From the sequence record NC_048016.1: a stretch of 64,000 bases of DNA; one strand, given 5' to 3'. The first letter of the stretch is position 1, and each line of letters starts with the position of its first letter. Position numbers and translations under genes: made by a program. Below the pieces are notes generated by a model that did no database searches, was not told the DNA's origin, and was given only the letters and a program-made list of their open reading frames with translations. This document shows, in pieces, positions 3,783 through 25,331 of the stretch.

Positions 3783-3785
3783 CAC

Positions 3786-3812
3786 AAGGCCCTTCGGGGC
3801 CTTTTCTTTTTT
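3786..3812 (+). terminator. rho-independent terminator (UUCG loop)
   Basis: AAGGCCC-TTCG-GGGCCTT followed by a T-run. Confidence 0.85.
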
Positions 3813-3832
3813 GATGGCGGGTAGGAGCCGAT

Positions 3833-5260: not shown

Positions 5261-6262
5261 ATGTCATTTACATTGCGCTGGAGCAATCCCAACACCATCG
5301 CGACGGTGGTTAACATCTATCGCGACACCAAGGACATCTCAGTAGCCGCCCTTCCTGCGCCACTGGCCACACTGAGTAATAATGAAACGTCGTACCGTGA
5401 TAACACGGTCGTTGCAGGACAGACGTATTACTATTTGATGACGGTAACGGCCAACGGTAAAACCGTGGCGACGGCCAGTCAGAAGTACACCGTGGCAGTA
5501 CGTCGGGGCATCGGTCCCAACACGCTTATCACCGGTGATGACCGCTTAGGCTACTACGGGGTGGTGCCACCAGAAGAGCAGTGGTATGGCAATCAATTAC
5601 CCGCAGGGTTTTTGGCCGCGTTTCCCACAGCCTTTGCAGCAACCGATCGTATCCCACTGTTGAAGTTTACCCGCAATGGTAAAATCTTCTACACGCTGGC
5701 CAGCTACTACGCCGGGTGGGCAACGTGGGCAACGCTGTATCAAAACGGCTTGGTGTACGGCACAGGGGATAACGGGCCGGCCAACGGTTACGGTACCCTT
5801 CCGCCAACGTTGCAAGATGCGAAAATCATCTCACAGAACGACACCTACCGGATGCGTCTACCGCGTGGTCTCTCCTCGGCGTCTGCCTCGCCTGTCTTCG
5901 CTTTTAACGACGCGTACAAAGACAAAACGCACGATGAGACTGACCTCATCACGTTCAACGAGTTCAATGACTTGTTGTACCCGCTGGTGATTGATGTGCC
6001 GAACAAGCAGCGCGTGCCGAACGTAATGCAAGCGCAGAGCGGGACACTCGGCTCCCCGGGCAATGCCGCGGGACAAGCGTTTCTCGGCGGGGGGACTATT
6101 TGCATGGAGCACGACAGCGCACAAGACCGTGTGTTGCACCGTGGGCTTTATACCAATGCTGCTGCCACTGTCGTTTCGAATCTGCAAGCAATGCAGCGCA
6201 TCACTTACGTGTCCCCGACACAACAGGGTCGTTATATCCCCCTCTTTGAATTGGTAGAATAA
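5261..6262 (+). CDS. putative virion/tail protein with N-terminal Fn3/Ig-like module, cassette gene B1
   Basis: 333 aa; MSFTLRWSN..VNIYR...Y.D..V..G.TYYY pattern is Fn3-like; paralog of 8663..9652. Confidence 0.65.
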   Translation: MSFTLRWSNPNTIATVVNIYRDTKDISVAALPAPLATLSNNETSYRDNTVVAGQTYYYLMTVTANGKTVATASQKYTVAVRRGIGPNTLITGDDRLGYYGVVPPEEQWYGNQLPAGFLAAFPTAFAATDRIPLLKFTRNGKIFYTLASYYAGWATWATLYQNGLVYGTGDNGPANGYGTLPPTLQDAKIISQNDTYRMRLPRGLSSASASPVFAFNDAYKDKTHDETDLITFNEFNDLLYPLVIDVPNKQRVPNVMQAQSGTLGSPGNAAGQAFLGGGTICMEHDSAQDRVLHRGLYTNAAATVVSNLQAMQRITYVSPTQQGRYIPLFELVE

Positions 6263-6271
6263 GGAGCAGTC

Positions 6272-7213
6272 ATGACCATTCGTTTAAGCTGGCCTTCACA
6301 GGCAAGCAAGGCATTGACGTCCATTGAAATCTACCGCAAGGTGGGGCACAGTGCGACGCTTGACATCAACAACCCAGGCACCCCGACCGCAACGGTTGCA
6401 GGAGACGCGACTCAGTACGTGGAAGACGTGGCGAACCTCACCGAAAAGACCGTTTACACGTATTGGATTGCGGCGGTAAAAGGCACCGAGCGGTTGTTCA
6501 GTGCACCGATTGTTCAAGGTTTCTTCTTGGATACCGGCCCCGGTCCGCAGAAGCTGTTAATGGGCGACTGGTACGCAGGCTACTTTGGGGTTGTCTCAAA
6601 CCAAGAGCTCGCCGCCCGTGAGGACATCATCGGGACTGGGGGCGGATTAACGGCTGCGCAAGCGGCACAGTACAAGTACGCCCAGAACTGGTGGTACAAG
6701 TTCGTCTATAAAGGACGGATTGTGTATTACCCAAATGTTCGAACCGGGTATGCTGCGTACGCAGACACGTATAACGCAGGCATGGCGTACGGCGTTGACG
6801 GTGTGGGACCTATCATTCCTACGGGTGCGAATCCCACTGCTGGGGTTCCACAAACCGCGATGTTCACCAAAAACGGATATAAGTATCGCGTCCGGTTGCC
6901 GTATGGTTTGGATTACAGTGTTAGTGTTGCTTCAACGGACTATGACAACGGCGAGTTTCGTAATACCTTTGCGCGTTTGTTTGCGACCAACACCAGCTAC
7001 ACGGACCCGAAAGACCAAGGGAAGTTTGCCTCACTCGCGCTCCTGTCGAGCGGTACGACAACTACGGAGAATGGGACGACGGCAATGGTGCCCTTGTACA
7101 CCCCGGCAAACGCCTTGTACTGCTACGGCTATAACCCAACGGCCATCACCTACGCGGGCATAAGCGGTCAGACATTCAGCATGTTCTTTGTCCTTGAGTT
7201 GGTCTTACCATAA
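6272..7213 (+). CDS. putative virion/tail protein with N-terminal Fn3/Ig-like module, cassette gene C1
   Basis: 313 aa; MTIRLSWPSQ..IEIYR; ends VLELVLP like 9652..10551. Confidence 0.65.
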   Translation: MTIRLSWPSQASKALTSIEIYRKVGHSATLDINNPGTPTATVAGDATQYVEDVANLTEKTVYTYWIAAVKGTERLFSAPIVQGFFLDTGPGPQKLLMGDWYAGYFGVVSNQELAAREDIIGTGGGLTAAQAAQYKYAQNWWYKFVYKGRIVYYPNVRTGYAAYADTYNAGMAYGVDGVGPIIPTGANPTAGVPQTAMFTKNGYKYRVRLPYGLDYSVSVASTDYDNGEFRNTFARLFATNTSYTDPKDQGKFASLALLSSGTTTTENGTTAMVPLYTPANALYCYGYNPTAITYAGISGQTFSMFFVLELVLP

Positions 7214-11981: not shown

Positions 11982-12668
11982 CTACGCGACCGATTCCAAG
12001 TTAGCGTTCTCGAGAGCGATGCCTGGGTCGGTTAAGAAGGCACGTTTGATGTTGCGGTACTTCACGTTGGTGGCTTCACCGGATTCTAACGCGTGGCGTT
12101 CCCCGATTGGGACTGCCGGTTCAATGTACGGACGAAAGAACAGGTAGTTACGGGCGTACTCCACGGTAGACTCTTTGAACTCGGTGTAGTGGCAATCGGA
12201 GTTGTCATCGTTGTACGCTGACTGGCCGAAGAGGTGCACGGCATCGTAGAACGACGCTGCAATCGCCTCGCCCACACCGGTGGCTTGCATGGTGCGCAAG
12301 AACATCAAGTCCGCAAAGTCTTTATCCACGGCCCCACTTAACCGTCCTGCTGGGGTGTCCGGGTAGGTGGCTACCGACGGGCACTTCTGGTACAGGAGGT
12401 CGTGCAGACATGCCGCCACCGCCCACGGGCCATTGGGTTTCAACACCGACTGAAGCATATCCGGGATACTCGCCATATCGGTGACAAACCCACGGGGTAC
12501 TGTGATGTAGAACAGGTCATCAGGCAGCACACCCGTGAGCGACACCATACGGTCTAGCCCCGGGGCATTACGGTAGATTGTGCGTAGCGTAAACGGGTAG
12601 TGGAAATCCTGCGTCAGGATAAACCATTTCCCCTCCAACACTTTATAAGTGAAATCCATCGGGCTCAT
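11982..12668 (-). CDS. DUF1353 family protein
   Basis: 228 aa; VPRGFVTDMASIP...GPWAVAACLHDLLY and AD.MFL.TM...GV motifs typical of DUF1353. Confidence 0.75.
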   Translation of the reverse strand: MSPMDFTYKVLEGKWFILTQDFHYPFTLRTIYRNAPGLDRMVSLTGVLPDDLFYITVPRGFVTDMASIPDMLQSVLKPNGPWAVAACLHDLLYQKCPSVATYPDTPAGRLSGAVDKDFADLMFLRTMQATGVGEAIAASFYDAVHLFGQSAYNDDNSDCHYTEFKESTVEYARNYLFFRPYIEPAVPIGERHALESGEATNVKYRNIKRAFLTDPGIALENANLESVA

Positions 12669-12786: not shown

Positions 12787-13371
12787 CTAGCCAAATAAGG
12801 CCTTCGCGTAAGTACGCATTTCACCCCAGATGCGACCCAACCAACCGTAGGTGAAGGTCTCGTTCGCTTTACGCTTCTCAGAGATATCCACGTAGTGGTA
12901 GGTCTGCATCCCGGTCAAACCAACCAGCAGGTAATTCATGCCCTCTGCACCGCGTTTTGCGAAGAACGCTTTCAGTGCAGTCAGGGTCTTCGTTCCCATG
13001 CCTTTGTCAACCACGAGATCAGCGTAATGGGTCTCTTGGTTGTTCAGCACGTTCAGAAGACGTTGCAGAGATTCCACAGCGTTTGCACGACCGGCATTGA
13101 TAGCATAGTCGAACAGACGGTCAGCCAGAAGCGGATTGAGGGCGAGGATATCATCCAGATAAAGCTTGTTCCACCAAAGTTTAACATAGATGTCTAACGC
13201 CGTTGACTGTGGCATCGAGACCATGGGGCCGGTGTAGCCATAATCCAGTGCCGTTGCTTTTGTGATGCCCCAGATGGTTTCACCACCGAGGTCGTTCTTG
13301 TTGTTGACATATCCCGCCTCGATATTCACTTTGGCGCGGATGATGCCTTCTCGACTGAAACGGTCTGCCAT
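12787..13371 (-). CDS. endolysin, glycosyl hydrolase family 108 with PG_binding_3 domain
   Basis: 194 aa; EAGYVNNKNDLGGETIWGIT GH108 motif, then LFDYAINAG...LQRLLN and C-terminal NE.FTYGWL.R. Confidence 0.9.
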   Translation of the reverse strand: MADRFSREGIIRAKVNIEAGYVNNKNDLGGETIWGITKATALDYGYTGPMVSMPQSTALDIYVKLWWNKLYLDDILALNPLLADRLFDYAINAGRANAVESLQRLLNVLNNQETHYADLVVDKGMGTKTLTALKAFFAKRGAEGMNYLLVGLTGMQTYHYVDISEKRKANETFTYGWLGRIWGEMRTYAKALFG

Positions 13372-13413
13372 TACTCTTTCCTCTTTCTCTTTGTGATTCG
13401 CACTGCGCGAAAG

Positions 13414-13419
13414 GTCATA
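13414..13419 (-). promoter_or_regulatory. candidate late promoter (TATGAC) for the endolysin
   Basis: TATGAC about 45 nt upstream of the endolysin start, just downstream of a terminator. Confidence 0.4.
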
Positions 13420-13429
13420 ACAAACCGCA

Positions 13430-13463
13430 AATAAAAAGAAGAAAGGGTGCCCCGAAGGGCACC
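13430..13463 (-). terminator. rho-independent terminator ending the radical SAM operon
   Basis: On minus: GGTGCCC-TTCG-GGGCACC followed by a T-rich tract. Confidence 0.8.
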
Positions 13464-13467
13464 ACTG

Positions 13468-14109
13468 TTATTCTACCGACGGATTAAACTCCGCCGCGTC
13501 GAGTGAGGCGTAATCGCCCTGCTCCGCAAATGCACGGATACGGGTTTTGTACGCGGTCAACTGAACGTGCAGCTGTGCGTTACGTGCGACAATCAGAGAG
13601 TACAGCATCTCTGTGTCTTTCGCTTCCCACTCTTCCAGCGCTTGGTTATCGGCAGTCACCCAATACTCCGGCACGGTGTTCGTTTGCACGAAGCCGGCCA
13701 GGGTGGTCAGGGTCTCACCTGCGGTCTGGAACATGTGGTCTTTGTACGCAATGTCAGCCGTGACCGCTTCACCGTACGCTGCATTAGTGGCCTGAAGTTT
13801 CTTGGCCAGCAGAGTATAGCAATACGCTTTGGTCGACTGCAACTCTTTGAGGTAATCCTTCACCTGAATCCCCAACACGTCTTTGATAAACGTTTTGGTT
13901 TGGCGTAGGGTGTAGTTGGCTTCGAACTGGGTCTGCCCCTGCTCTTGCAACTGACGCAGTGCATCTTTCTCACTGAGTCCCTCTAAGAGTGCGTAGTGTA
14001 AACGCTTGGCCAGCGTGACATCGCCGTTGGGGTCAAAGAACAACCCGTTGCGGTCAATCTGGCCATCGCCGTTTTCAAACCGCGCTTTTATCTCGTCAGC
14101 ACTAAGCAT
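13468..14109 (-). CDS. DUF4376-like protein (tail-fibre associated)
   Basis: 213 aa; C-terminal HMFQT...YWVTADNQ...LY..IV.R...L...K.RI pattern resembles DUF4376. Confidence 0.6.
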   Translation of the reverse strand: MLSADEIKARFENGDGQIDRNGLFFDPNGDVTLAKRLHYALLEGLSEKDALRQLQEQGQTQFEANYTLRQTKTFIKDVLGIQVKDYLKELQSTKAYCYTLLAKKLQATNAAYGEAVTADIAYKDHMFQTAGETLTTLAGFVQTNTVPEYWVTADNQALEEWEAKDTEMLYSLIVARNAQLHVQLTAYKTRIRAFAEQGDYASLDAAEFNPSVE

Positions 14110-14636
14110 TCTTTCTCTCCCACGAATCCAACTTTGGTCAACATGTCATAGGACATGATTTCAAAGTCGATACGAAGATCCAGACGGTACTGCAAGTTCG
14201 GCAACGGCTGGTCATTTTCTTGGAACGCCTGCATGAACATCATGTCATCGAAGTAATGACACGCGCTCTCGGGGTTGCGCACCATCCAGACCGGGACATC
14301 CGGGAAGGACAGACACAGTGCCACCAGAGAATCACCGCCACGATCGATAGTGCCGGTACGCAGGATGTTTACCTTTGAAGCAGGGGCCGCCAGAATACGC
14401 GCTTCGAAACCCGGGTTACGCTTTTCGATTTCTGCTAACGAGTCGTGGCCGTTCTCCACGCACTGAATCGGCAGGACAACGTTAAGAGCAAAACGGTTAA
14501 TCAAACGCAGCCAGTGATCGTTGAAATCATCGGCAGGCACGATAGCGTGAATGTTAAACAGCTTATAATGCTGTAAGAACGCTTCGATTTTGCGACTATC
14601 GTACTTCGTAAAATTCTGGAGAAGCAGGCTTTTCAT
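14088..14636 (-). CDS. hypothetical protein in the radical SAM cassette
   Basis: 182 aa; overlaps both neighbours (41 and 22 nt). Confidence 0.6.
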   Translation of the reverse strand: MKSLLLQNFTKYDSRKIEAFLQHYKLFNIHAIVPADDFNDHWLRLINRFALNVVLPIQCVENGHDSLAEIEKRNPGFEARILAAPASKVNILRTGTIDRGGDSLVALCLSFPDVPVWMVRNPESACHYFDDMMFMQAFQENDQPLPNLQYRLDLRIDFEIMSYDMLTKVGFVGEKECLVLTR

Positions 14637-15993
14637 TCTTGAATTGTTCCTTGCGGTCAGTTTGTTCCACAGCCATGGTCATCTCACGGATGGCGGTGAC
14701 GTGTAAAGGCTGTTCTGCAGCTTCGCGGGTGAGTTTCTCTTCAACAGCAAAGTTGCGCTTCTGTTGGCACTGGTAACAGTTACAAACAGACTTGTCGTAC
14801 TGCGATTCGTACGACCCGAAACGTTGTTTCCACCACTGCGCCACTAAGAGCTTCGCGGTAGTCCAACCACACTGGCGACGTTCGCCGTGATACTCTTTAC
14901 GAGCGTCTTCTTCACCGTCGCCATTTTCATACGCCGCCGCCACGCACGAGGCACACAGGTGCTTCGCTGGGCAACCGATACACTGGTCAGGATACGACTT
15001 CCACTGTTCCTGAACTTCGGCCAGCAGTTTACCGCCGTCGGTGTTCACGATGGTTTGACCTTCGAGCTTACCGATGGCCTGACGGGTGGTTACCGTGGAC
15101 ATGAAGCGGTTACAACCGAAGATGTTACGGTCGAAGCCGAGACAAGTCATGTACACCGTGGTGCCGCAGTGCGGACGCAGACGTTGTGGGTCGTAGCGTA
15201 CAGAGTCATCATGGATGAGCTTCTCACGCCAGTCCGGGTTCCACAGTTGGTCAACATCCAGACCGTCCGGCAGCACGTGACCGATTTCAGAGTTCTGGTC
15301 TAAGTGCAGACCTTTCTCAATGAAATACTCCGCCACTTCGATGAACTGGTTGGCAATCTCGAGTGCCATCTGGCGCGGTAACACGTCTTCGAAAACGACG
15401 TTACCGTACAGACGACCGCCCCCGGTCACATCAATCAGCGACTTCATCCCAGCACCGTACTGCATCAGCGTTTCTTTCGTGAAGGTGGCTTTCACCCCAA
15501 TCTCACGAACACCGATTTCTTGCAGAAGCTTATAGCCGGCGACCGCTGCTTGGTAAGACCCTTGACGGGACGTGGTGAAGATACGGTACTTATCGTGGGT
15601 CTCGGGCAGACCATCGATAGAGACACCGATCGACAGGTAATCTTTCCAGCGATTCAGAATCTCCAGCGCCAGCGGTTTGTCAAACAACGTGCCGTTGGTG
15701 GAGATAGAGAACACGTAAGGCAGATTGTGCTTTTTGCACAGCTCTTCTGCGGTTTCGAAGGCCGCTTTCAGCAGCTTCGGCTGCATGAAGGGTTCGCCAC
15801 CGATGATATCGATGATGATACCGTCGATACCTTGGTTCTTCGAGAAGAAGCGATGTTTATCGCGATTAAAGCAGGCGTGAATAAAATCAACGACATCAGC
15901 GACTTTGTTATTACGCGGATACTTACGCTCGTAGCAATACTCACAGTCGAGGTTGCACGATAGGTTGGTGACTATCTGGTAGGTTGCATCCAT
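14596..15993 (-). CDS. radical SAM/SPASM-domain enzyme, probable CXXX-repeat peptide maturase
   Basis: 465 aa; CNLDCEYC (CxxxCxxC), IIGGEPF and STNG motifs; C-terminal Cys-rich SPASM-like region HCG...C...GCNRF...CIGCPAKHLCASC...CGW. Confidence 0.9.
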   Translation of the reverse strand: MDATYQIVTNLSCNLDCEYCYERKYPRNNKVADVVDFIHACFNRDKHRFFSKNQGIDGIIIDIIGGEPFMQPKLLKAAFETAEELCKKHNLPYVFSISTNGTLFDKPLALEILNRWKDYLSIGVSIDGLPETHDKYRIFTTSRQGSYQAAVAGYKLLQEIGVREIGVKATFTKETLMQYGAGMKSLIDVTGGGRLYGNVVFEDVLPRQMALEIANQFIEVAEYFIEKGLHLDQNSEIGHVLPDGLDVDQLWNPDWREKLIHDDSVRYDPQRLRPHCGTTVYMTCLGFDRNIFGCNRFMSTVTTRQAIGKLEGQTIVNTDGGKLLAEVQEQWKSYPDQCIGCPAKHLCASCVAAAYENGDGEEDARKEYHGERRQCGWTTAKLLVAQWWKQRFGSYESQYDKSVCNCYQCQQKRNFAVEEKLTREAAEQPLHVTAIREMTMAVEQTDRKEQFKNEKPASPEFYEVR

Positions 15994-16005
15994 CCCTATC
16001 TCCCC

Positions 16006-16890
16006 TTATTTTTTAATTGGATTAAGCCAGTTCATGATGTAACGGTAGCCGTGCTCACCGATGGCCAGTGCAATCTTGTTGCAGCCACGGTCCACGACCA
16101 TCTCAACGTTCTCAGGAACTTGCAGGTCGCCATTCGGTTGACTGACGATAATTTCACTACAGGCATTACACGCATCTTCTTCGAAGAACTTCTCGAGCTT
16201 GATGATGGTGTCACGCTTGTTAATGCGGTTGAGCTTACGCATGTTGTCTTGCAGACGCTCAAAGCCGTACACGAAGTTTAACACGTGGTCAGGCGACAGC
16301 ACTTTCTTCATCTGGTTATCGAACAGGTAGTTCATGCCGAGGAAACCAAGATGGTGAATGGCGTCTTGCATTTTCATCATGCCTTCGTGCCAGCGCATGT
16401 CCCCGATCTTCTCACGGGTTAACACTGACCAGAGGATAACGTTGTCCAGCTGGGCGATGACTTCAAACGCTTCGGTATCACCGGAACGAGCAAAGTCCAT
16501 TAAACCACGGGCATCATCTTCGTAACCGTCGATGGAGACCACAACACGATGGAAGGTTTTCAAAAACTCGACTTGCTCTAAACGTAACTTACGTCCGTTT
16601 GTGAAAAGATAGTGCACGGCAGAAGGACGTTCTACGCGCATCATCTCGACCGACTCGACGAGTTTACGGTAAGACAGTAACGGCTCACCCCCCGTCCAGA
16701 TGATCTCTTCCACACCGGGATTCTTTTTCAGTAACTCCATCATTGCCTCTTCATGGGTTTTACGAGACACGTCCCCTTTGACCATGTGAATCTCACCCGC
16801 ACAAAACGAACAATTGAGGTTACACTTCGACGTCAATGCTACGTTAATGGTCTTTGCAGGTGAGTAAACATCTTTACTTAACGTTCTCAT
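16006..16890 (-). CDS. second radical SAM protein (short C-terminus)
   Basis: 294 aa; CNLNCSFC, WTGGEPLL, FTNG, VVSIDG; only a short CNAC...GC tail. Confidence 0.85.
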   Translation of the reverse strand: MRTLSKDVYSPAKTINVALTSKCNLNCSFCAGEIHMVKGDVSRKTHEEAMMELLKKNPGVEEIIWTGGEPLLSYRKLVESVEMMRVERPSAVHYLFTNGRKLRLEQVEFLKTFHRVVVSIDGYEDDARGLMDFARSGDTEAFEVIAQLDNVILWSVLTREKIGDMRWHEGMMKMQDAIHHLGFLGMNYLFDNQMKKVLSPDHVLNFVYGFERLQDNMRKLNRINKRDTIIKLEKFFEEDACNACSEIIVSQPNGDLQVPENVEMVVDRGCNKIALAIGEHGYRYIMNWLNPIKK

Positions 16891-17800
16891 CCGTCATTCC
16901 GTACAGGCGACGTTGGAAAGAGAACAGTGGGTCGGTGTCTCGTACATCTTCACCCGCCTTTAACAGACGTGGTGAGCGATACGCATCGTACAGTGCGTTA
17001 AGAACGGATTGACGCTCACCCATGCGGATAAGGTCGTCCAGTTCAACCGGGGACGAAATAAACGGTTCCAGCGCAGCCTGTTGTTCGTCGGTGAACTCTT
17101 TCAGCTGTGACTGGAGCAGGAAGCGAATCAGTTTGCGATCATCCGCCGTGGAGTTCGGGACAGCGCCAAACTCAGTCTGACAGAGATAGGCCATCCACGG
17201 TTTACGGATGCGGAGTGTTTGCGCATGCGGGTCTGCGATGTAGACCCACTCTTGCTTCTCTGCATCCCATGCAAACTTATAACTAAACGCGAGTAAGTCT
17301 GCCAAGCAGTCGATATTCGCGGCTTCAAGGCCAGAGAACGGGTGATACATTTCACGGTCTTTCTCCACGCTTCCAGTGCCGGCTTCCACCAGTTTGAATA
17401 AGTGGGACCAGCTTCCGCAGTAATCGCTGCTGTAGCTACGCACGCACACCGGACGCATGCCGAGTTCTTTAAAGGACTCGAACATCAGTTCCAGTGGTGC
17501 ACTATAGTTCAGTACCGAATCTGTGAAAAAATACTTGTCGTTGACAAGCTTCCCGGTAAAACCAGAACCGCCTAAGGCGAACTGAATGGATTTCACGTTC
17601 AGCTTGCCCACCGTGGTCGCATCAATCACGGTGTACTCTTTTTTCGTAAAGTTGCGACCGCGAAGCTTAGGCCATTCAAACTGGTCCATGGCAATCAGCC
17701 GCAGCTCGTCGTTGATGTGTGCGTTAACACTGTCCGGTGACGAGATGTGAATTGGGTAATTCATGCTCGTGCGGTACGCAAGATGATCGTTACTCTTCAT
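16874..17800 (-). CDS. hypothetical protein in the radical SAM cassette
   Basis: 308 aa; RBS AGGGGA; 17-nt overlap with radical SAM 2; no family recognised. Confidence 0.7.
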   Translation of the reverse strand: MKSNDHLAYRTSMNYPIHISSPDSVNAHINDELRLIAMDQFEWPKLRGRNFTKKEYTVIDATTVGKLNVKSIQFALGGSGFTGKLVNDKYFFTDSVLNYSAPLELMFESFKELGMRPVCVRSYSSDYCGSWSHLFKLVEAGTGSVEKDREMYHPFSGLEAANIDCLADLLAFSYKFAWDAEKQEWVYIADPHAQTLRIRKPWMAYLCQTEFGAVPNSTADDRKLIRFLLQSQLKEFTDEQQAALEPFISSPVELDDLIRMGERQSVLNALYDAYRSPRLLKAGEDVRDTDPLFSFQRRLYGMTDENVK

Positions 17801-17812
17801 TAGGTTCCCCTG

Positions 17813-18022
17813 TTAACTCGGGAAGGAGACTGATTTCGCACCGCCTGAGCTACTCCAGCTACAGGTTCCGCCGCAGTTGTACGCGCCAGCACGAATCCCA
17901 CCCAAGTTGTTGGTGTTGTTACACGTTCCACGGTTGGCGATATAATCAACCGCCTGTCCCGTGGTAATATAGCGTTCGATGCTCGCCACGCGGTTACCGA
18001 TGTCTTTCAAGCTTACTGCCAT
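17813..18022 (-). CDS. short precursor-like peptide (leader plus truncated Cys core)
   Basis: 69 aa; MAVSLK leader and CGGTCSWS motif homologous to the two long peptides; RBS AGGAG. Confidence 0.75.
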   Translation of the reverse strand: MAVSLKDIGNRVASIERYITTGQAVDYIANRGTCNNTNNLGGIRAGAYNCGGTCSWSSSGGAKSVSFPS

Positions 18023-18031
18023 AGCCTACTC

Positions 18032-18460
18032 CTACGGTCCAGAACAGCCTGCTCCACAACTCCCGCCACAGCCACTACCGCAACTTCCCGAGCACCCGCC
18101 AGAACATTTGCCTGAACAGTTACCCGAGCATGTGCCAGAACAACCGCCGGAGCAGCCGCCGCCACAGTTACCGCCACAGCTGCCACTACAACCACCGGTG
18201 CAGCTAGATGAACAGTTGCCCGAACAGGATGACGAACACCCAGACGAGCAGTTACCCGTACAGCCACCAGAACAGCCGTTACCGCACGTCCAGCTACAAG
18301 AGCCGTTACAGTGCAGTGCCGCTGGGGTGAAACCGTTGAGTAAATCAGCATTATTAGTAGTGCGTCCACCGATGTAGTTTTGCACGCCTGCTTCAGTTTT
18401 TAGTGCGGTGTTCTCAATATTGACAACACGGTCACGCACCGATTTTAATGAAATCGCCAT
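18032..18460 (-). CDS. CXXX-repeat Cys/Ser/Gly-rich precursor peptide (23 perfect repeats)
   Basis: 142 aa = 50-aa leader + 23 x C-X-X-X; RBS AGGAG. Confidence 0.9.
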   Translation of the reverse strand: MAISLKSVRDRVVNIENTALKTEAGVQNYIGGRTTNNADLLNGFTPAALHCNGSCSWTCGNGCSGGCTGNCSSGCSSSCSGNCSSSCTGGCSGSCGGNCGGGCSGGCSGTCSGNCSGKCSGGCSGSCGSGCGGSCGAGCSGP

Positions 18461-18468
18461 TTCCGCTC

Positions 18469-18858
18469 CTAAGGGCTGCTACAACCAGCACTGCAGTTAC
18501 TGCTACAGGTGCCAGAGCAACCGCTAGAGCAGCTGCTGCCACATGAACCTGAACAGCCGCTTGAACAGCCACCAGAACACGAGGATGAGCAACCTCCCCC
18601 GCAACCACCAGAACACGAGCCCGAACAGTTACCTGTACACACGCCGCTACAGCTTCCTGAGCAGCTCGAGCAACCGTGACTACAACCTGACGAACACGTC
18701 CAACTGCACGACCCGTTACAACGGGCCCACGTATCAGGTTGGCCTGCCAATAGATTCGCATTGTGAACTTTGCTGTTCACCTGCCCCTCTACGGACGCGC
18801 CGGTTGCTGCTTGGACTCGGTCAAGACGGGCACTTAGTTCTTTAAGTGATATCGCCAT
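18469..18858 (-). CDS. CXXX-repeat Cys/Ser/Gly-rich precursor peptide (21 Cys)
   Basis: 129 aa = 46-aa leader + 20 x CXXX + one CXX; RBS AAGGGAAGG. Confidence 0.9.
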   Translation of the reverse strand: MAISLKELSARLDRVQAATGASVEGQVNSKVHNANLLAGQPDTWARCNGSCSWTCSSGCSHGCSSCSGSCSGVCTGNCSGSCSGGCGGGCSSSCSGGCSSGCSGSCGSSCSSGCSGTCSSNCSAGCSSP

Positions 18859-18878
18859 TACCTTCCCTTTTTAATAAG

Positions 18879-18912
18879 ACACGGGCACTCGCCATATAGA
18901 CGAGGCCCGTGT
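18879..18912 (-). promoter_or_regulatory. stem-loop upstream of the precursor peptides
   Basis: ACACGGGC/GCCCGTGT plus CTCG/CGAG stem; loop contains TATG on the minus strand; only a weak U-tract. Confidence 0.45.
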
Positions 18913-18921
18913 GTAATTATA

Positions 18922-20121
18922 TTAACGTGAACCGGCATCAGCCTGTACATCGTCACGTGTGGTCAAGTTGGCGTTGACGTGCACGTTTGCCTGAACCACG
19001 CCGCCATACTGCTTGTGCAGGTACTGGGTGTGTGGATCGGCGGCAGACAGGTGGTTAGCGAGCGTCTGGTTAACACTGGCGATGTTGCCCTCGGTCGTGG
19101 TGACACGACGGGTCAGTGCGGTCAGGTCAACACGCAGCTGGTCAATCTGCTGCTGTGCGTCACCGGCTCCGGACTTGAGGTCATCAATCTGGTCTTGCAA
19201 CCCAACGGCCGTTTGCTTCAACTCATTCACGGTTTTCTGTAACGTCAATACCAGTGAATTGAGGTTGGCCACAATCAACGTCATCTTCTGGTAGTTTTGG
19301 TCTACCGTGTTCAGTTGGTCGTTGAAGGTGGTCAGCGAACTGACGATGGCATCAATGCGCCCACCCAGTGCCGTATCAGCAGCCTTAAGGTCGCCAATCT
19401 GGACGAGGGTTGCATCGATAGCTGCCTGCACGCCGGCAATCAACGCACGGATTTCGGTTGCGGTCAAACCATCAATATCGTGGATATCAAGGTTGTGCAC
19501 GTTACCCGTGGCATTGATGTGGGCATTCAGCGCGTCCAAGAAGTTATTCTTGATGTCGCCGATGATGTCTTTGATTTTCTCAAGCTGAACGGCATCGCCT
19601 GAACCAATCGCATCCAGAATACCCGAGAGCAGGGTAATGACGTATTCAAAACCAAAGATATCGCCAACGTCTTTAAACGCCGGGGCACCCGGTAGCGTAT
19701 CCGGGAAATCGATTAAGTCGGCAAAGTTCACCTTCTTATTATCAATGCCCAGAATCGCAATCGCATTTTCAATCGCAGTCACGTTCGCAGACATTGGCCC
19801 ACCGACAACCTGAGCGGTCACGATGATGTCTGTTGGAATGCTGCTGTTGGTCACTACAACTGCCATCACGACTTCTTTGTTGCCCGAGAGCTTCATGTAG
19901 GCCGGATGAGCGAAAATCAGTTCGTAGTCGGTACCACGTTTATACGGCGTGGTGGGCGAGTTCGTGGCACGCAGTTTAAAACTGTCTGCGTAAAACGGAC
20001 CTGCCGGAAAAGCAAAAGACCGGTTAACTTTACCGGAACCCAAGACCACGGGGATACTTACCGCGTTCGATGTCAGAGTTCCTTTAAGGTCAAGCGGATA
20101 CTGGAAAATAATATCACTCAT
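18922..20121 (-). CDS. coiled-coil tail-fibre-like virion protein
   Basis: About 399 aa from MSDIIF; N-terminal GPFY...DYELIF domain shared with the giant fibres; long heptad region; NHLSAADPHTQY fibre motif. Confidence 0.7.
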   Translation of the reverse strand: MSDIIFQYPLDLKGTLTSNAVSIPVVLGSGKVNRSFAFPAGPFYADSFKLRATNSPTTPYKRGTDYELIFAHPAYMKLSGNKEVVMAVVVTNSSIPTDIIVTAQVVGGPMSANVTAIENAIAILGIDNKKVNFADLIDFPDTLPGAPAFKDVGDIFGFEYVITLLSGILDAIGSGDAVQLEKIKDIIGDIKNNFLDALNAHINATGNVHNLDIHDIDGLTATEIRALIAGVQAAIDATLVQIGDLKAADTALGGRIDAIVSSLTTFNDQLNTVDQNYQKMTLIVANLNSLVLTLQKTVNELKQTAVGLQDQIDDLKSGAGDAQQQIDQLRVDLTALTRRVTTTEGNIASVNQTLANHLSAADPHTQYLHKQYGGVVQANVHVNANLTTRDDVQADAGSR

Positions 20122-20165
20122 CTCCAAGCTCCCTTACGAGAGGGCATCCCTGCCCTCACCAGTGG

Positions 20166-23100
20166 TTAAGACGACAAATTACTCGTTGGGATTAACATAA
20201 GATTGATGGTTACCTCACCCAGCGTGACCATCTTTCCGTCAGGCCCGAAGAACTTCGAGGCGACAACGACTTCCCGGTTCGACCCATTCGCGCGCTCCAA
20301 GAACGGCGGACAGTAGCTGATTTCCGGAGCCACCACACTCACCACCCCTGTGGTGTCTGCCACCGGAACATAGACATGGGAGACGGTCTCCAACACGTTG
20401 AGGTTACCGGACTGCGTACCTTGGTCTGAGGTGAATGCCACCACCGACGTCCCACTCGAGCGGATTAACTCGCGTTGGGTTGTCCCATTCCAATCGTAGG
20501 CAATAAAAGCAATGTGGCAGATGGTCCCACCGGCGGTACCTGCCTGAATGACTTCGATCCCAACCGTGTGCTGCCCGTTAGACACCGGGAAGTCCTGGGT
20601 GGCGAGCGCGTTTGACCCTTTCGAGGTAATGCCGGATGCCACACGCACGCCATCAATGTAGACGTGACACATGTCATCCACCGCAAACTTAAGTCGCAGC
20701 GTGCCCCCGGTGGTGGTCACTTTGAACTTGGTCGCATACGTACCGTAGCCCGGAATCGTCCGTGGGTTGATGTCAATCCAGATAAGCCCCAACGCATTTG
20801 CATCCGGGTTCTCCGCTGCTGTCACGGCCACTGCACGGGCAGGAGCCCAGAACAGCTCAGGCAACACTGCCCCGGAATACCACGGCTGGGAAGCCGGGAC
20901 ATAACGGTTAATCAGCGGACGAGACAACAATGATCCCACCGCCAGTGACAGTGCGGACTGACCCACGTACCCATCACCCGAGGTCGCAATCGGTAACGGT
21001 TCCAGCAGACCGAGCGGTGACTCTGCCCGTTCACGCACCACGTTCGAGCCGTGGCTGTACGCAACCCCCTCATGCTCCTCTAACTGACGTACCGCCCCCA
21101 GACGTTTCACCGGGGTAATGTTCTCCTCGATGATACGGCTGCTGTCGGTCTTGACGTAACCCACGTAAAGCAGGTTACTGCTGTCAGGGTAACGTTCGGT
21201 ACTGACCCGGTACCGCGCCTTCGTGGTGCCTTCGTCTGGGTAGACTTCAGCGTGGAAATAGAAGGTCTGGTTTCGGTAGTCACTGAACGCCGACGAGAAG
21301 TCAATGCTGTACTGGTCGAGCACGTACTCTTTCGAGTTAATGAACAGTCGCTCTGACTCGGTCAGGTAAAGAATCCACCCTTCCGCCGTCTTCACGCCCG
21401 CCAACACCACCGGTTGCGCATTCGCCGGGGAACCAAACGGACTGGCCATGAAGTCCGCAATCGGATACGCGTCGCCTGAGGAGAACACCGGGTCCAGTTT
21501 GAAATACGAATTCACCATCGCATTCAAATCTTTCACCCACACCCACGTGTTTGGGCTGTACGTTGGTCGGTCAAGCCCCAGTGCCCCGGTGGAGCTGGTC
21601 CACTGGTTACCGGTCAGGGTCAACACCGCACGGAAGTTCAATGCACCCCCATTCCCGACTTGGGCGATACGCAGCACGGACGGCAGATAGAGCACAAACT
21701 TCTGCCCATCGTTGGACACGAGTTGCGGCTGACCAAAGCGGCGGTCTTTTCCACCAAAGCTGAAATCCAATCCGACGTTGGCGATGTTCAAGTCAAGGTC
21801 GTTCTGGAACGTCAACAGTTGGAGGGTGCTGGAGCTAAACGCGAGAATCCCGTTGGAAACCGACGGGTACATCACAAAGTAGTAATGGTCGATTTTATTC
21901 ACACCGTCTACAAAGCGTTGTGCCGTGGCCTGTCCCAAGAAGAGCTGCTGCGGTGTCCCAATCGCAAAGCCCCACAGTGCGACATACAGTTTCCCGATTT
22001 GGTCAGCGGCCATCAGTCGCTCGGATGCGTAGCCGTTCGCTGCACCCGCTGGGGCGTTAGCCAACATGATACTGCGGACTTTCGCCCACTCGGTATCGTT
22101 CAGCGTCAGTTTGTCGGCGGTAAAGTTCGGGTTCCCGGTCACGTTCTTGTACTGCACCGTTTCAGGCTTAGTAAAGAAGCACCCGTTCAGCGTGCCTTTA
22201 TCTGCCGCATTCACTTTCACCATCGCCAGCTGGGACATCGCAGCGTAGGTTGCCGTGGTGATAACACGCCGGTTGTTGGTTGGACCAAAGCCCCCGTAAC
22301 CCGGTACGTCGTAATCCGTGTCGGTTGAATACAACACCTCAACGCACAACGCATCCTTGGTACCGGTGAGCCAGATGGCTTTAGAGTCCCCACCGAAGAA
22401 CAGCGGGTAGGCCATGCCAGAGGCGTACACAGACCCACGTCCTTGGTCGAGTTTGGTGGTGTTACCCACAACCGCACCTGTCGTCACATCGGCTGACAAC
22501 GAGTCGTAATGGTCACCCCCGCCCGGAACACCCATCGTGACTATCTGCACCGGGACATCACTGTCATTACCAACCGAAAGCACAGCGACCTTGTCATCGT
22601 GGTGTGCCACAAAGGCACGCTGGTTGGCTTGGGTCCCTGTCCACTTCAGTGGGTAGTTCGTGGTCAACAAATCCACGCCGGTTTTGTACTTCGCACCGGT
22701 ATCCAGTAACTGCAGTGGGAAGATTTCCGGGTGCTCCAGTGTCACCGTCAGGGTATCGAAGTCGAGCGTGAATGTCGTGTACCAGTTCTTGAAGCTCAAT
22801 GACTCGGTTGCTTTCGCCAGCCAAATCGTTGGCGTCATTGCCACCCGTAACACTTCATCCTCTTGCCCCAACACCCGGTTACACGTTGGCCCGTGCACCA
22901 GATTGCGCCCTACCGTGAAGGTACTGAGTGCGGCTGGGCTGATGTACGCTACCCGGTCGGTCTCGGTGTTGGCGGTGTCGTACCCCCCTTCGGCACGGAG
23001 CAGTAACCACGAACCTGCCACGCCCTTCATCCCGTTCAAGGTTTCAAGGGTAAAGGCCACGTCTTGTGCGCCGATGCTATTGAGTGAAACCGACGCCAAG

Positions 23101-25253
23101 GCCACACGGTAACTGTCGTTCGCCAGTCGGGTGCGCAGCAGATACACTTTACTGCCGTAGACCACGAGGTCATCCGTTTCCCCGGCGGGCACCATTGCCG
23201 CATTACTGCCTGCCACATCCATGATGGTCGGGAACGTCACTCGCACCACATTCAGGTGGCGATTGTGGTCGGCTGTCCCGGCGAGGTCAACGAGGTAATA
23301 CGCCCCGTCGCTGCCTAAACAGATAAGGGCATCCTGCCCCGGCACCACCACTGCACTGAGTGTCACCCCCGGGTACTTGGTGGTCATCCCGGCTGGCTGA
23401 TAGCGCTGTGAAGTTTGTTGGACGTTGCTGAGCGTGTTGTCGTCGTTAAAGGTACCGTAAGCGTAATAGATGTGGCGATCAGTCAGACCGTCCGTTCCGT
23501 TACGCAGAATATACAACCGGTCCCCTTCAAAACGCATCGCCCCGTAGAACTGGCTGTTGTTCTTGCCATACCCTTCGTAGTTACCCTGTGCCGGGATAGG
23601 CAGGAACCCGAGGTTGCCGTACGACGCCCCAATAACCGCCCACGTTGGAATCAGACCGTTGGCTTTGCTTTCCAAATCCGCCAAAGTCTTCTCAAAGAGA
23701 TACCCCTGTTTAGCCGTCACCACACGGTCTGTGCTGGCATCGATAATATCCCAGAGTAACACCAAGCCGGCTGCCGAAGAGCTGGCGTAGGGTACGTTGG
23801 TCACGTCTGCGAGGGTATGGGTGTGGTTGGTCAGGGATTTGTTGGCCACGGCGGCGGTTAACGCTTTGGTTACCGGCTTATCAAGCGGTGCGGTGTTCTG
23901 CATCTTCTCGACACCGACGTCCGCAGGCGTCAGGGTTAAGGTCTGGTCTGCATCAAAACCTTTGCCGTTGACGGTGTAAGTGTCATCGACGTAGTTCCCC
24001 AGCAAATCCCGCATCGCGGTAATACCCGCCTGTGAAATTGCATAACCGTCACTGAGTGAGGTACGGTTGGACGTGACCTTGATCAGACCCCGCACCCCCA
24101 CTGAGGCTTCGGGCAGGTTCGCTTCCAGACGGAACGGGGCGTAGGACTTGCCTGACCCGTAGACCTTCACGGTTTCCGTAGAGGACATGTACGCGTTAGC
24201 TGCTTTGAGTTTCACCTCGTGCAGGTACATCTCCACCATGTCGGGTGTAATCAAATACACCCCGTTGAAGACCGGAGCCAATGCATCAGGGCCCGAGTGC
24301 ACCATTAAGGTGTTCAGCCCCGCTGACATCTCCACCGCCACACCCGGGTTCGTGTTCGCACTGTCTGCGGTGAACCGTAAAGTCTTTTTGGTGGAGACCA
24401 ACACGTTCGGCCCTTTGAAGGTGATAACGTGGTCGTTGTTGGCGGTGGTGTACGTCAGGACATTGTTGTTGAGAACACGCAAGCGACCGAACACGTCATT
24501 AAACGCGGTGTCGTTACGCATCAGCAAATCAACGTGCTTTTGCTGCAAACCGGTTGTGGCCATCAGGGTCACGAGCTGGTCAATGGTGCGACCAAATGCC
24601 CGGGTGGCGTCCACGGCTTTATCCGTGACCTTCAAGGCCCCGATGTCATCCGCAGTGTACGAATGCCCGTGGGACTTCAGCAGGTGGTGCTGATACATCC
24701 CATCGTCGAACACTTTCTTGCCGGTTTGATAGATGAGCTCAGTGACTTCACTGTACGCGGCATCCATGTCCCCTGCCCGCTTAATCAGGCCCAAACGAAT
24801 GTCATTTAACGCGGAGACAATCTCATCGCGGGCAATGGCTTCGTCCAAGTCCTGTGGCGGGTCGATAGCTGGAATGGTCGGCGCATAGCGCATCAACGCA
24901 GACCAGTCTTCGTTACGGGGGTCTTTCAGGTCACTGCTGACCAGCCATTTGCCAATCTCGCTCTGCGGTACGCGGTAATCACGCCCCACAGCGTAGATGC
25001 TGTATTTGATGGCATCGTGGTTCAGCAGCATTATCCCGCCAAACACCGCGGCTTGGAATGCCTCAGCGGCTTCTTTGTAATAGTAGCCGAGGTAATAGTC
25101 CATGCCCTCGATAAGCGGGACATCATTTAAATCGGTGATAACCAGCCCGGTGCGGTAGAAAGGGCCTTCCGGCGGAATAACCGTATTGAAACGGTTTGGG
25201 AACGTCGAGACTTTCAACGTGCCTTCAAACTGGGCCGGGGTTTCCGTCGCCAT
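20166..25253 (-). CDS. giant tail fibre / tail-associated virion protein
   Basis: 1695 aa; shared N-terminal domain, NTAPLDKPV...NHTHT fibre motifs, C-terminal beta-sandwich (PA14-like) segment. Confidence 0.75.
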   Translation of the reverse strand: MATETPAQFEGTLKVSTFPNRFNTVIPPEGPFYRTGLVITDLNDVPLIEGMDYYLGYYYKEAAEAFQAAVFGGIMLLNHDAIKYSIYAVGRDYRVPQSEIGKWLVSSDLKDPRNEDWSALMRYAPTIPAIDPPQDLDEAIARDEIVSALNDIRLGLIKRAGDMDAAYSEVTELIYQTGKKVFDDGMYQHHLLKSHGHSYTADDIGALKVTDKAVDATRAFGRTIDQLVTLMATTGLQQKHVDLLMRNDTAFNDVFGRLRVLNNNVLTYTTANNDHVITFKGPNVLVSTKKTLRFTADSANTNPGVAVEMSAGLNTLMVHSGPDALAPVFNGVYLITPDMVEMYLHEVKLKAANAYMSSTETVKVYGSGKSYAPFRLEANLPEASVGVRGLIKVTSNRTSLSDGYAISQAGITAMRDLLGNYVDDTYTVNGKGFDADQTLTLTPADVGVEKMQNTAPLDKPVTKALTAAVANKSLTNHTHTLADVTNVPYASSSAAGLVLLWDIIDASTDRVVTAKQGYLFEKTLADLESKANGLIPTWAVIGASYGNLGFLPIPAQGNYEGYGKNNSQFYGAMRFEGDRLYILRNGTDGLTDRHIYYAYGTFNDDNTLSNVQQTSQRYQPAGMTTKYPGVTLSAVVVPGQDALICLGSDGAYYLVDLAGTADHNRHLNVVRVTFPTIMDVAGSNAAMVPAGETDDLVVYGSKVYLLRTRLANDSYRVALASVSLNSIGAQDVAFTLETLNGMKGVAGSWLLLRAEGGYDTANTETDRVAYISPAALSTFTVGRNLVHGPTCNRVLGQEDEVLRVAMTPTIWLAKATESLSFKNWYTTFTLDFDTLTVTLEHPEIFPLQLLDTGAKYKTGVDLLTTNYPLKWTGTQANQRAFVAHHDDKVAVLSVGNDSDVPVQIVTMGVPGGGDHYDSLSADVTTGAVVGNTTKLDQGRGSVYASGMAYPLFFGGDSKAIWLTGTKDALCVEVLYSTDTDYDVPGYGGFGPTNNRRVITTATYAAMSQLAMVKVNAADKGTLNGCFFTKPETVQYKNVTGNPNFTADKLTLNDTEWAKVRSIMLANAPAGAANGYASERLMAADQIGKLYVALWGFAIGTPQQLFLGQATAQRFVDGVNKIDHYYFVMYPSVSNGILAFSSSTLQLLTFQNDLDLNIANVGLDFSFGGKDRRFGQPQLVSNDGQKFVLYLPSVLRIAQVGNGGALNFRAVLTLTGNQWTSSTGALGLDRPTYSPNTWVWVKDLNAMVNSYFKLDPVFSSGDAYPIADFMASPFGSPANAQPVVLAGVKTAEGWILYLTESERLFINSKEYVLDQYSIDFSSAFSDYRNQTFYFHAEVYPDEGTTKARYRVSTERYPDSSNLLYVGYVKTDSSRIIEENITPVKRLGAVRQLEEHEGVAYSHGSNVVRERAESPLGLLEPLPIATSGDGYVGQSALSLAVGSLLSRPLINRYVPASQPWYSGAVLPELFWAPARAVAVTAAENPDANALGLIWIDINPRTIPGYGTYATKFKVTTTGGTLRLKFAVDDMCHVYIDGVRVASGITSKGSNALATQDFPVSNGQHTVGIEVIQAGTAGGTICHIAFIAYDWNGTTQRELIRSSGTSVVAFTSDQGTQSGNLNVLETVSHVYVPVADTTGVVSVVAPEISYCPPFLERANGSNREVVVASKFFGPDGKMVTLGEVTINLMLIPTSNLSS

Positions 25254-25285: not shown

Positions 25286-25331
25286 GCCGTCCCCCGAGAG
25301 GGACGGCGCTTACGGACGGGTTGTCCGTAAG
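25286..25331. other. two adjacent GC-rich hairpins without a U-tract
   Basis: GCCGTCCC/GGGACGGC (25286-25307) and CTTACGGAC/GTCCGTAAG (25309-25331). Confidence 0.55.

Follow-up and report, generated by a model that had tools for sequence, protein, structure and literature searches.

A radical SAM enzyme pair of Erwinia phage Wellington that lacks a RiPP recognition element and probably matures cysteine-ladder proteins of the tail fibre

The window analysed here is a stretch of 64,000 nucleotides of sequence record NC_048016.1 that is 100% identical to Erwinia phage Wellington, an SPN3US-like jumbo phage of 245 kb whose host is Erwinia amylovora. Two adjacent genes within it, gp178 and gp179, encode dissimilar radical S-adenosylmethionine (SAM) enzymes, and neither has room at its N-terminus for the recognition element (RRE) that many enzymes maturing RiPPs (peptides made by the ribosome and modified after their translation) use. 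Our preferred reading, to which we assign a probability of roughly 0.6, is that the two enzymes form an RRE-independent complex that matures a cysteine ladder of the tail fibre, probably by thioether cross-linking. The genes at the centre of this proposal are the following, where CXXX denotes a cysteine followed by any three residues.

14596..15993, minus strand: gp178, long radical SAM/SPASM enzyme of 465 residues (Pfam Radical_SAM, TIGR04115 and CteB profile match)
16006..16890, minus strand: gp179, short radical SAM enzyme of 294 residues (Pfam Radical_SAM and predicted fold)
16874..17800, minus strand: gp180, 308 residues, phrog_8030, a conserved fourth component with a predicted orphan fold (PHROG match and predicted fold)
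17813..18022, minus strand: gp181, 69 residues, phrog_6085, a short CXXX paralog without the repeat ladder (PHROG match)
18032..18460, minus strand: CXXX-repeat protein B, 142 residues with 23 cysteines (TIGR04114 and cysteine spacing)
18469..18858, minus strand: CXXX-repeat protein A, 129 residues with 21 cysteines (TIGR04114, cysteine spacing and codon bias)

An earlier note, made from the letters of the window alone, had placed two adjacent radical SAM genes at 14596-16890. Indeed, these coordinates correspond to exactly two minus-strand open reading frames (ORFs), and both products exceed the Pfam Radical_SAM gathering cut-off of 29.5 bits (46.7 bits for gp178 and 55.3 bits for gp179). The SAM motif, CxxxCxxC, begins where the note had located it, at residue 13 of gp178 (C13, C17, C20) and residue 23 of gp179 (C23, C27, C30). 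Only 12 residues therefore precede the motif in gp178, and the claim that neither enzyme could accommodate an N-terminal RRE is borne out both by these residue numbers and by the profile of the phage long-enzyme family, whose best solved relative is CteB (E 1.8e-40, with anSME next) and whose alignment to CteB starts at residue 102, just past the CteB RRE. Across 21 aligned homologs, seven further cysteines of gp178 never vary (C276, C294, C338, C341, C347, C350 and C375). Judged from sequence, this C-terminal set is a near-canonical SPASM pattern, for which two auxiliary clusters are predicted. The full SPASM-like region proposed for the long enzyme was therefore correctly recognized, as was its extra CNCYQC, a CxCxxC motif that in the same alignment is kept only within the jumbo-phage clade. 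Similarly, the short enzyme has the CNAC...GC elements ascribed to it, with C240-x2-C243 mostly conserved and C270 nearly invariant among its homologs.

The best-matching family of gp178 is TIGR04115, the maturases of CXXX-repeat targets (113.8 bits, with positions 7-341 of the 359-position model aligned), followed by the PapB ranthipeptide maturase family NF047865 (107.7 bits). Scores against the SCIFF maturase model of CteB/ScfB (TIGR03974; 58.8 bits, cut-off 425) and the anSME model (56.1 bits, cut-off 349) are far lower. By these profile comparisons gp178 is kin to the CXXX-repeat maturases, though divergent, and also to CteB and PapB, which are thioether synthases. Structure prediction with AlphaFold 2 gave a confident model of gp179 (pLDDT, the predicted score of the local distance difference test, 90), and its best solved folds were CteB (E 3.6e-11) and then SkfB (E 5.5e-11, template-modelling score 0.58, root-mean-square deviation 4.5). 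On this predicted fold, gp179 is best described as a peptide-maturase-like radical SAM enzyme with a truncated, Twitch-like and possibly single-cluster auxiliary domain. A separate observation concerns the extreme C-terminus of gp178 (14596-14640), where a poorly conserved linker is followed by an acidic/aromatic tail, FYE(V/A), kept across jumbo phages as …EFYEVR or …QFYEA; this tail may be a docking peptide.

Upstream of the radical SAM genes, on the same strand, proteins A and B have a cysteine every four residues with a single spacing of three. Both pass TIGR04114, the family of cysteine-rich repeat targets of radical SAM enzymes (23.7 bits for A and 24.4 bits for B, cut-off 20). Since A and B pass TIGR04114 and the best family of gp178 is TIGR04115, these two CXXX-repeat proteins are most likely the substrates of the pair. 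The product of gp181 shares with A and B the N-terminal 45 or so residues, the entry motif CGGTCSW and the first two ladder cysteines. Current annotation largely obscures these genes: RefSeq gp183 (18432-18761) overlies protein A in another frame, and RefSeq gp182 lies in the frame of protein B but starts seven codons late. Similarly, in SPN3US (locus L002, 3950-5068) protein A and the short paralog are unannotated and only a wrong-frame ORF covers protein B, and in CR5 there is no annotated feature beneath protein A. That proteins A and B are nonetheless truly coded in the CXXX frame is clear from several signs. In comparison with two related phages, the first, second and third codon positions hold 15/11/87 and 48/36/166 differences, and a Shine-Dalgarno site precedes each of the three starts (A, B and gp181). 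All 21 cysteines of protein A are invariant across eight orthologs at 45-81% identity and the residues between them vary; the count is exactly 21 in every jumbo-phage ortholog and in a distant version of the module at locus L008. A ladder of such fixed length is no loose low-complexity tail but a defined structure. Tandem Repeats Finder detected no DNA-level array beneath the CXXX repeats, and recent slippage as the source of the cysteine periodicity was therefore rejected. A sequence search of protein B against PDB chains returned no match at E<=1.

To place the pair among its relatives, IMG/VR was scanned with the long-enzyme family alignment, yielding 409 relatives. A same-strand neighbouring run of at least seven cysteines with a period of 3-4 was found in 84 of 87 viral or metagenomic loci containing a gp178 relative, compared with 10 of 80 control loci from bacterial genomes with more remote radical SAM/SPASM relatives; those 10 were the top-scoring ones. 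The viral loci form two classes. Class I, which includes Wellington, is set off by a branch of support 100, and class II has a single enzyme and no gp180-like gene. In all 24 complete class I loci, which span jumbo phages, P2-like myophages and gut-metagenome phages (L007, a 1.5-kb fragment, was left out), a CXXX protein, a gp180-like protein, a short radical SAM enzyme and a long one occur together, and the order of these four genes varies among lineages. In four divergent lineages (L027, P0122, P0124 and P0127) the short and long enzymes are fused into proteins of 634-686 residues with two CxxxCxxC motifs each. For example, the fusion is one ORF of 686 residues in L027, a phage contig of 284 kb. 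The representatives in P0122, P0124 and P0127, recovered by exhaustive search at 34-51% identity, belong to different class I sub-branches, and the P0124 locus reads fibre fragment, DUF4376 gene, fibre with a C-terminal CXXX domain, gp180-like gene and fused enzyme.

The two enzymes are adjacent in 62-67 phage records, so that they do not stand side by side by accident, and SPN3US-like phage records name them 'putative radical SAM superfamily protein 1/2'. They are dissimilar, as had been claimed, in that profile-profile comparison aligns them over the radical SAM core alone (columns 9-196, 21% identity). Their functional coupling, which the earlier note had put forward as sequential action or a heterodimer, is likewise supported by co-occurrence in 24 of 24 loci despite shuffled gene order and by fusions in four lineages. 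This strict co-occurrence and repeated fusion are strong comparative evidence for one unit acting on the same substrate, and gp178 and gp179 very probably share one pathway and act as a physical unit. For its part, gp179 could make a second series of links, could work on just one of the substrates, or could be a non-catalytic partner, as is partly the case for TrnD. The fused enzymes do not have the CxxC...GC pattern of the short enzyme, and P0127 has other cysteines in that stretch. In L017, an SPN3US-like contig, the short radical SAM gene is present twice (3530-4450 and 6043-6981), with one copy between the genes for the A and B proteins.

Class II connects these phage enzymes to the canonical family. 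Several of the class II enzymes tested lie above the TIGR04115 cut-off (385-586 bits) and others reach 262-304 bits; intermediates between gp178 and true members include L005 (169 bits), L040 (262 bits) and L048 (304 bits). Class II enzymes also begin at the SAM motif, and true TIGR04115 members start 13-81 residues past the preceding stop codon. Since this is so, the absence of an RRE is, by sequence comparison, the normal architecture of the CXXX-repeat maturase family and not peculiar to Wellington. Directly upstream of the class II radical SAM gene there is a conserved ORF of about 100 residues (L049 6568-6894, L035 6594-6899, L054 6613-6918, L056 6577-6930, L041 6601-6897 and others) with no Pfam match. 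A relationship of this ORF to gp180 was rejected (hhalign probability 0.3%), and it could be the canonical family's own partner or recognition protein.

The remaining genes of the unit, which bear on substrate recognition and on the link to the tail fibre, are listed below.

13446..13463, no strand assigned: GC-rich hairpin with T-runs on both strands, just past gp176 (consensus match only)
13468..14109, minus strand: gp176, 213 residues, phrog_8169, last gene of the unit (PHROG match)
14088..14636, minus strand: gp177, 182 residues, phrog_7988, accessory gene (PHROG match)
18922..20127, minus strand: gp184, 401 residues, coiled-coil virion structural protein (match to phrog_2163, virion structural protein)
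20166..25253, minus strand: gp185, 1695 residues, putative giant fibre protein and positional counterpart of SPN3US gp168 (gene position)

The string of genes from gp185 to gp176 is bracketed by hairpin/T-run sites at 13446-13463 and 25286-25307, both of them consensus matches only. The cassette is tightly packed, with gaps of at most 63 nucleotides and three overlaps, one of which joins the end of gp178 to the start of gp177 over 41 nucleotides. It follows gp185 and gp184, with gp184 between gp185 and the CXXX genes. Among the class I loci compared, gp177 is present only in the jumbo-phage and L008 versions of the module. The SPN3US homolog of gp176 carries DUF4376 (Pfam), and at locus L172 a DUF4376 gene flanks a CXXX fibre.

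No cassette protein gave a PqqD/RRE signal (PF05402) in Pfam searches at E<=0.1, and rescanning gp176, gp177 and gp180 at E<=10 also gave no PqqD match, although HMMER is a weak instrument for RREs. The predicted structure of gp180 is confident (pLDDT 86, predicted template-modelling score 0.81), and searches with it found no RRE match in PDB, AFDB, BFVD or VIA-align. Its best Foldseek hit in PDB had an E of 0.25, AFDB clusters returned its own family and one uncharacterised protein only, BFVD returned the Asesino ortholog only, and the best VIA-align Z was 4.3. Language-model look-alikes were no more informative: those of gp180 reached 0.86 to unnamed clusters, which is chance level, and those of gp177 were all glycosyltransferase family 2 at 0.75, a score that shuffled sequences also reach, so that a glycosyltransferase in the cassette is no more than an unconfirmed lead. 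On its predicted fold, gp180 is a candidate adaptor or chaperone with an orphan architecture.

Class I ladders are preceded by an entry motif, N-x-x-L-x-G-x5-6-aromatic-x-C-x-G-x-C-S-W-x-C, whatever lies upstream (L024 and L027 are exceptions); in class II the corresponding motif is C-x3-C-[ST]-G-L-C. Because this motif alone is conserved before class I ladders regardless of the upstream sequence, we hypothesize that recognition proceeds via this core-proximal entry motif, possibly with gp180 as an adaptor. PapB is active in vitro without its RRE or leader, which makes RRE-independent engagement chemically feasible for this enzyme class.

The genomic context of other class I loci points to tail fibres. 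In P2, the slot after Tail_P2_I holds the genes for the gpH fibre and the gpG chaperone. The P2-like contigs L024 and L028 encode, in this order, Baseplate_J, Tail_P2_I, a protein ending in a CXXX domain, a relative of gp180, the radical SAM enzymes and the tail sheath. Thus, the gpH/gpG slot is occupied there by a CXXX-tipped fibre together with gp180-like and radical SAM genes, and whereas ordinary fibre chaperones assist folding non-covalently, two radical enzymes are found in this position. Tail-fibre PHROGs are matched by the CXXX-bearing proteins of L024 (E 1e-55) and L027 (E 3e-32), and those of L027, L028, L172 and L005 end in phrog_6085, the jumbo-phage CXXX family. Tail modules are likewise the setting of the canonical class II systems, beside genes for Dit, minor tail, baseplate wedge and tail-fibre proteins. 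SPN3US carries the same cassette as Wellington, and its gp168, which occupies the same position as gp185, is a virion baseplate or tail-fibre candidate by mass spectrometry and is missing from tailless particles. From these comparisons the CXXX products resemble domains of tail fibres more than a diffusible RiPP that depends on a leader.

Taken together, we propose a module of four parts, specific to phages, which would mature a domain of the tail fibre and in which gp178 and gp179 would be the catalytic core, gp178 being descended from the CXXX-repeat maturases. The two enzymes would act as one complex, probably aided by gp180, and as radical SAM enzymes they would be expected to depend on host Fe-S assembly and a reductant. 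An entry motif at the start of the ladder, perhaps together with gp180, would take the place of the leader/RRE pair, and from there the complex would walk along the cysteine ladder adding intramolecular thioether cross-links, so that covalent staples would turn the Gly/Ser-rich tail into a rod or tip. The matured products would join gp184 and gp185 in baseplate-associated fibres. Thioether formation is our best-supported guess for the chemistry, because the closest solved relatives of both enzymes are thioether maturases and because CrpC and its substrate CrpA provide a precedent. More tentatively, and at somewhat less than even odds, there may exist a widespread class of phage tail fibres whose cysteine ladders (20 to more than 60 cysteines with a period of 4) are stapled by phage radical SAM enzymes. 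The version of SPN3US-like jumbo phages would then be a heterotrimer in which two chains carry a ladder and the third has none, matured by an RRE-independent complex of two radical SAM enzymes with an orphan-fold adaptor and guided by the entry motif.

Several points weigh against this proposal. Despite being the best match, gp178 scores far under the curated cut-off of TIGR04115 (113.8 against 350 bits), and it is also far under that of the PapB family (107.7 against 340 bits). For gp179, viperin-like folds come close behind the peptide maturases (4e-11 versus 7e-9). The repeats are nearly devoid of Asp, Glu or the Asn-rich acceptor positions used by known ranthisynthases. With so few residues of this type, the repeats do not point to an acceptor carbon. 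In class I as a whole the repeats follow C-[S 59%, T 18%, G 13%]-[G 53%, S 21%]-[G 34%, S 30%, T 19%], with Asp and Glu outside the top residues listed for the three repeat positions (lowest listed share about 1%); the Wellington consensus is C-[S/T]-[G/S]-[G/S/T], and its repeat regions contain no Asp or Glu. The CXXX proteins of jumbo phages are also small and separate, not fused to a fibre, and their place in the virion is deduced from other lineages and from the gene neighbourhood. The virion proteomics of SPN3US is uninformative on them because their genes were unannotated in the databases searched. Finally, a recognition domain could still be hidden in gp176 or gp177.

The layout of the substrates invites a more conventional explanation, in which the first 45 or so residues are a leader, an RRE is supplied in trans by gp177, gp176 or gp180, and a cleaved core diffuses away as a bacteriocin, metal chelator or host-takeover factor. 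Three paralogs do share this N-terminal region ahead of a cysteine-rich core, gp176 or gp177 may be a site for an RRE, and the language-model look-alikes of the first 62 residues of protein B include cysteine-rich RiPP precursors modified by radical SAM enzymes, at scores of 0.65 or less in a search whose scores of 0.81 or less were all at chance level. However, in other lineages the same CXXX domain and entry motif form the C-terminus of tail-fibre proteins of 236-451 residues in which they are preceded by unrelated sequence, and the N-terminal region common to the paralogs is therefore no general leader. Moreover, Pfam and PHROGs identified no protease or transporter among the cassette proteins, Pfam gave no PqqD signal in them and the gp180 fold no RRE match, and the canonical family has no homolog of gp180, gp177 or gp176. 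We therefore regard a classical RiPP as quite unlikely.

Other alternatives keep part of the proposal. The same complex could act on the same substrates by a different chemistry, such as formylglycine or dehydro residues, epimerisation, C-C links, or a metal or disulfide ladder with minor enzymatic priming. Consistent with this, the long enzyme has anSME as its closest solved relative after CteB, the epimerases YydG/EpeE are among the gp179 matches, and the acidic acceptors of PapB and CteB substrates are lacking in the repeats. Yet the anSME model score is far under its cut-off (56 against 349), and the sulfatase motif C/S-x-P/A-x-R is absent from both repeat regions, which contain no Arg and whose sole Pro is the final residue. 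The strongest family and structure matches are thioether synthases, and the sole characterised enzyme acting on a large cysteine-repeat protein, CrpC, makes ranthionine links. A different chemistry thus appears rather unlikely to us. It is highly improbable, by comparison, that gp179 is functionally unrelated to gp178 and has a small-molecule substrate, for instance by modifying nucleotides in the manner of viperin, MoaA or QueE. Its N-terminal region does match viperin, MoaA and QueE models weakly (31-45 bits), and viperin folds rank just under CteB and SkfB, but these family matches cover the generic SAM core only and lie far under the cut-offs. The top two folds, CteB and SkfB, are peptide thioether maturases, and a gp179-type gene stands beside the CXXX, gp180-like and long radical SAM genes in every complete class I locus and is fused to the long enzyme in four lineages.

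The proposed complex of gp178, gp179 and the CXXX proteins can be set against several known systems. The canonical TIGR04115/TIGR04114 system is the most similar, with an RRE-less radical SAM/SPASM enzyme that starts at CxxxCxxC and a neighbouring protein with a long run of Cys-Xaa-Xaa-Xaa. It differs in having neither the second, short radical SAM enzyme nor the gp180-like protein, and in its entry motif (C-x3-C-[ST]-G-L-C, as against C-x-G-x-C-S-W in Wellington-type modules). In open-access text and bioRxiv we found no experimental work on this canonical family. CteB, of the thermocellin/SCIFF system, and PapB, of freyrasin, have the radical SAM and SPASM architecture of gp178. Unlike gp178, however, they carry an N-terminal RRE (residues 1-86 in PapB), and their substrates are short leader-containing peptides, whereas those of Wellington are protein-sized. 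PapB reportedly joins Cys to Asp or Glu, and the PapA unit CSANDA has an acidic acceptor a few residues after its Cys, neither of which the Wellington repeats offer.

A protein-sized substrate is known for CrpC of Methanococcus voltae, which installs thioether cross-links on the repeat- and cysteine-rich CrpA; a paralog, CrpB, shares the N-terminal 47 residues without the rich repeat region and may assist (PMC13692751). CrpA and CrpB resemble the Wellington trio of A, B and the short paralog. On the other hand, CrpC falls in a different family (TIGR04463) and an RRE is predicted for it, and gp178 shares neither feature; the CrpA repeats are 17 residues long with C-x-x-Q/D motifs, in contrast to the period of 4 in Wellington; and CrpC is a single enzyme of an archaeal cell with a proposed metal-related role, as opposed to two phage enzymes. 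The best precedent for the two-enzyme, two-substrate arrangement of gp178 and gp179 is TrnC/TrnD of thuricin CD. Both of these are reportedly full-length SPASM enzymes. Each is inactive alone, and as a tight complex they jointly cross-link two precursors, the products being the two peptides of a two-component antibiotic (PMC12093266). That complex is biochemically established, whereas the complex of gp178 and gp179 is proposed from co-occurrence and fusion only. HxsB/HxsC (TIGR03978/TIGR03977) similarly combine a SPASM radical SAM enzyme with a shorter one, and their short-period repeat target is taken from the family names only. Scores to these models are low (gp178 to HxsB 65.9 bits, cut-off 370; gp179 to HxsC 45.2 bits, cut-off 267.9), and the Hxs repeat is H-x-S in a bacterial system rather than C-x-x-x. 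We know of no characterisation of the His-Xaa-Ser system.

Several observations concern the wider setting of the cassette. Upstream of it three giant minus-strand ORFs lie in a row (20166-25253, 25341-29375 and 29386-33048; 1695, 1344 and 1220 residues), which resemble the SPN3US baseplate/fibre paralog family C (gp168-170) by position and size only; the two of the three that were scanned had no Pfam match. Downstream, at 12787-13371 and 11982-12668, are an endolysin (Glyco_hydro_108 and PG_binding_3) and a DUF1353 protein, the latter named tail assembly chaperone in RefSeq. A sigma-70 promoter scan found 5 sites against 7.3 expected, which is no enrichment and is uninformative since the phage has its own RNA polymerases, and scanning the window for tRNAs and Rfam families gave no match. 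Metagenomes from plants, leaves, soil, food and seeds, as well as seed metatranscriptome libraries, hold sequence that is 92-100% word-identical to 13400-19399, which suggests that the Wellington lineage is common on plants. For example, one contig of 4,585 nucleotides from a seed metatranscriptome spans 13481-18065 and starts beside the terminator-like hairpin; DNA carry-over is possible in this library, and the contig was not counted as proof of transcription.

The existence of CXXX-repeat radical SAM maturases is already known to database curators. What appears to be new is that the system is set in phage tail fibres, that a second enzyme is obligatory and is joined by a partner of orphan fold, that the two enzymes are naturally fused in some lineages, and that a model phage has hidden genes for the substrates; in open-access text and bioRxiv we found no paper linking the pair with CXXX substrates, TIGR04114/04115 or tail fibres. 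For the enzymology of RiPPs and radical SAM enzymes, the module offers a natural RRE-less system in which two radical SAM enzymes, separate or fused, would act on substrates of protein size, each offering over 20 repeated sites. As mining on a large scale has been anchored on RRE association, families of this kind have been systematically overlooked. SPN3US is an established genetic model, and correcting its CXXX annotation is useful in itself, since genes left out of that annotation were also absent from the databases against which its virion proteins were searched. If the proposal is true, receptor-binding fibres are covalently reinforced by radical chemistry, which would be a new kind of virion maturation and would bear on how stable the particles are, on how hosts are recognized and on efforts to engineer robust phages. 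On the more tentative reading of a widespread class of stapled fibres, it would also be the first time that a structural protein of the virion is seen to be cross-linked after translation in the manner of a RiPP.

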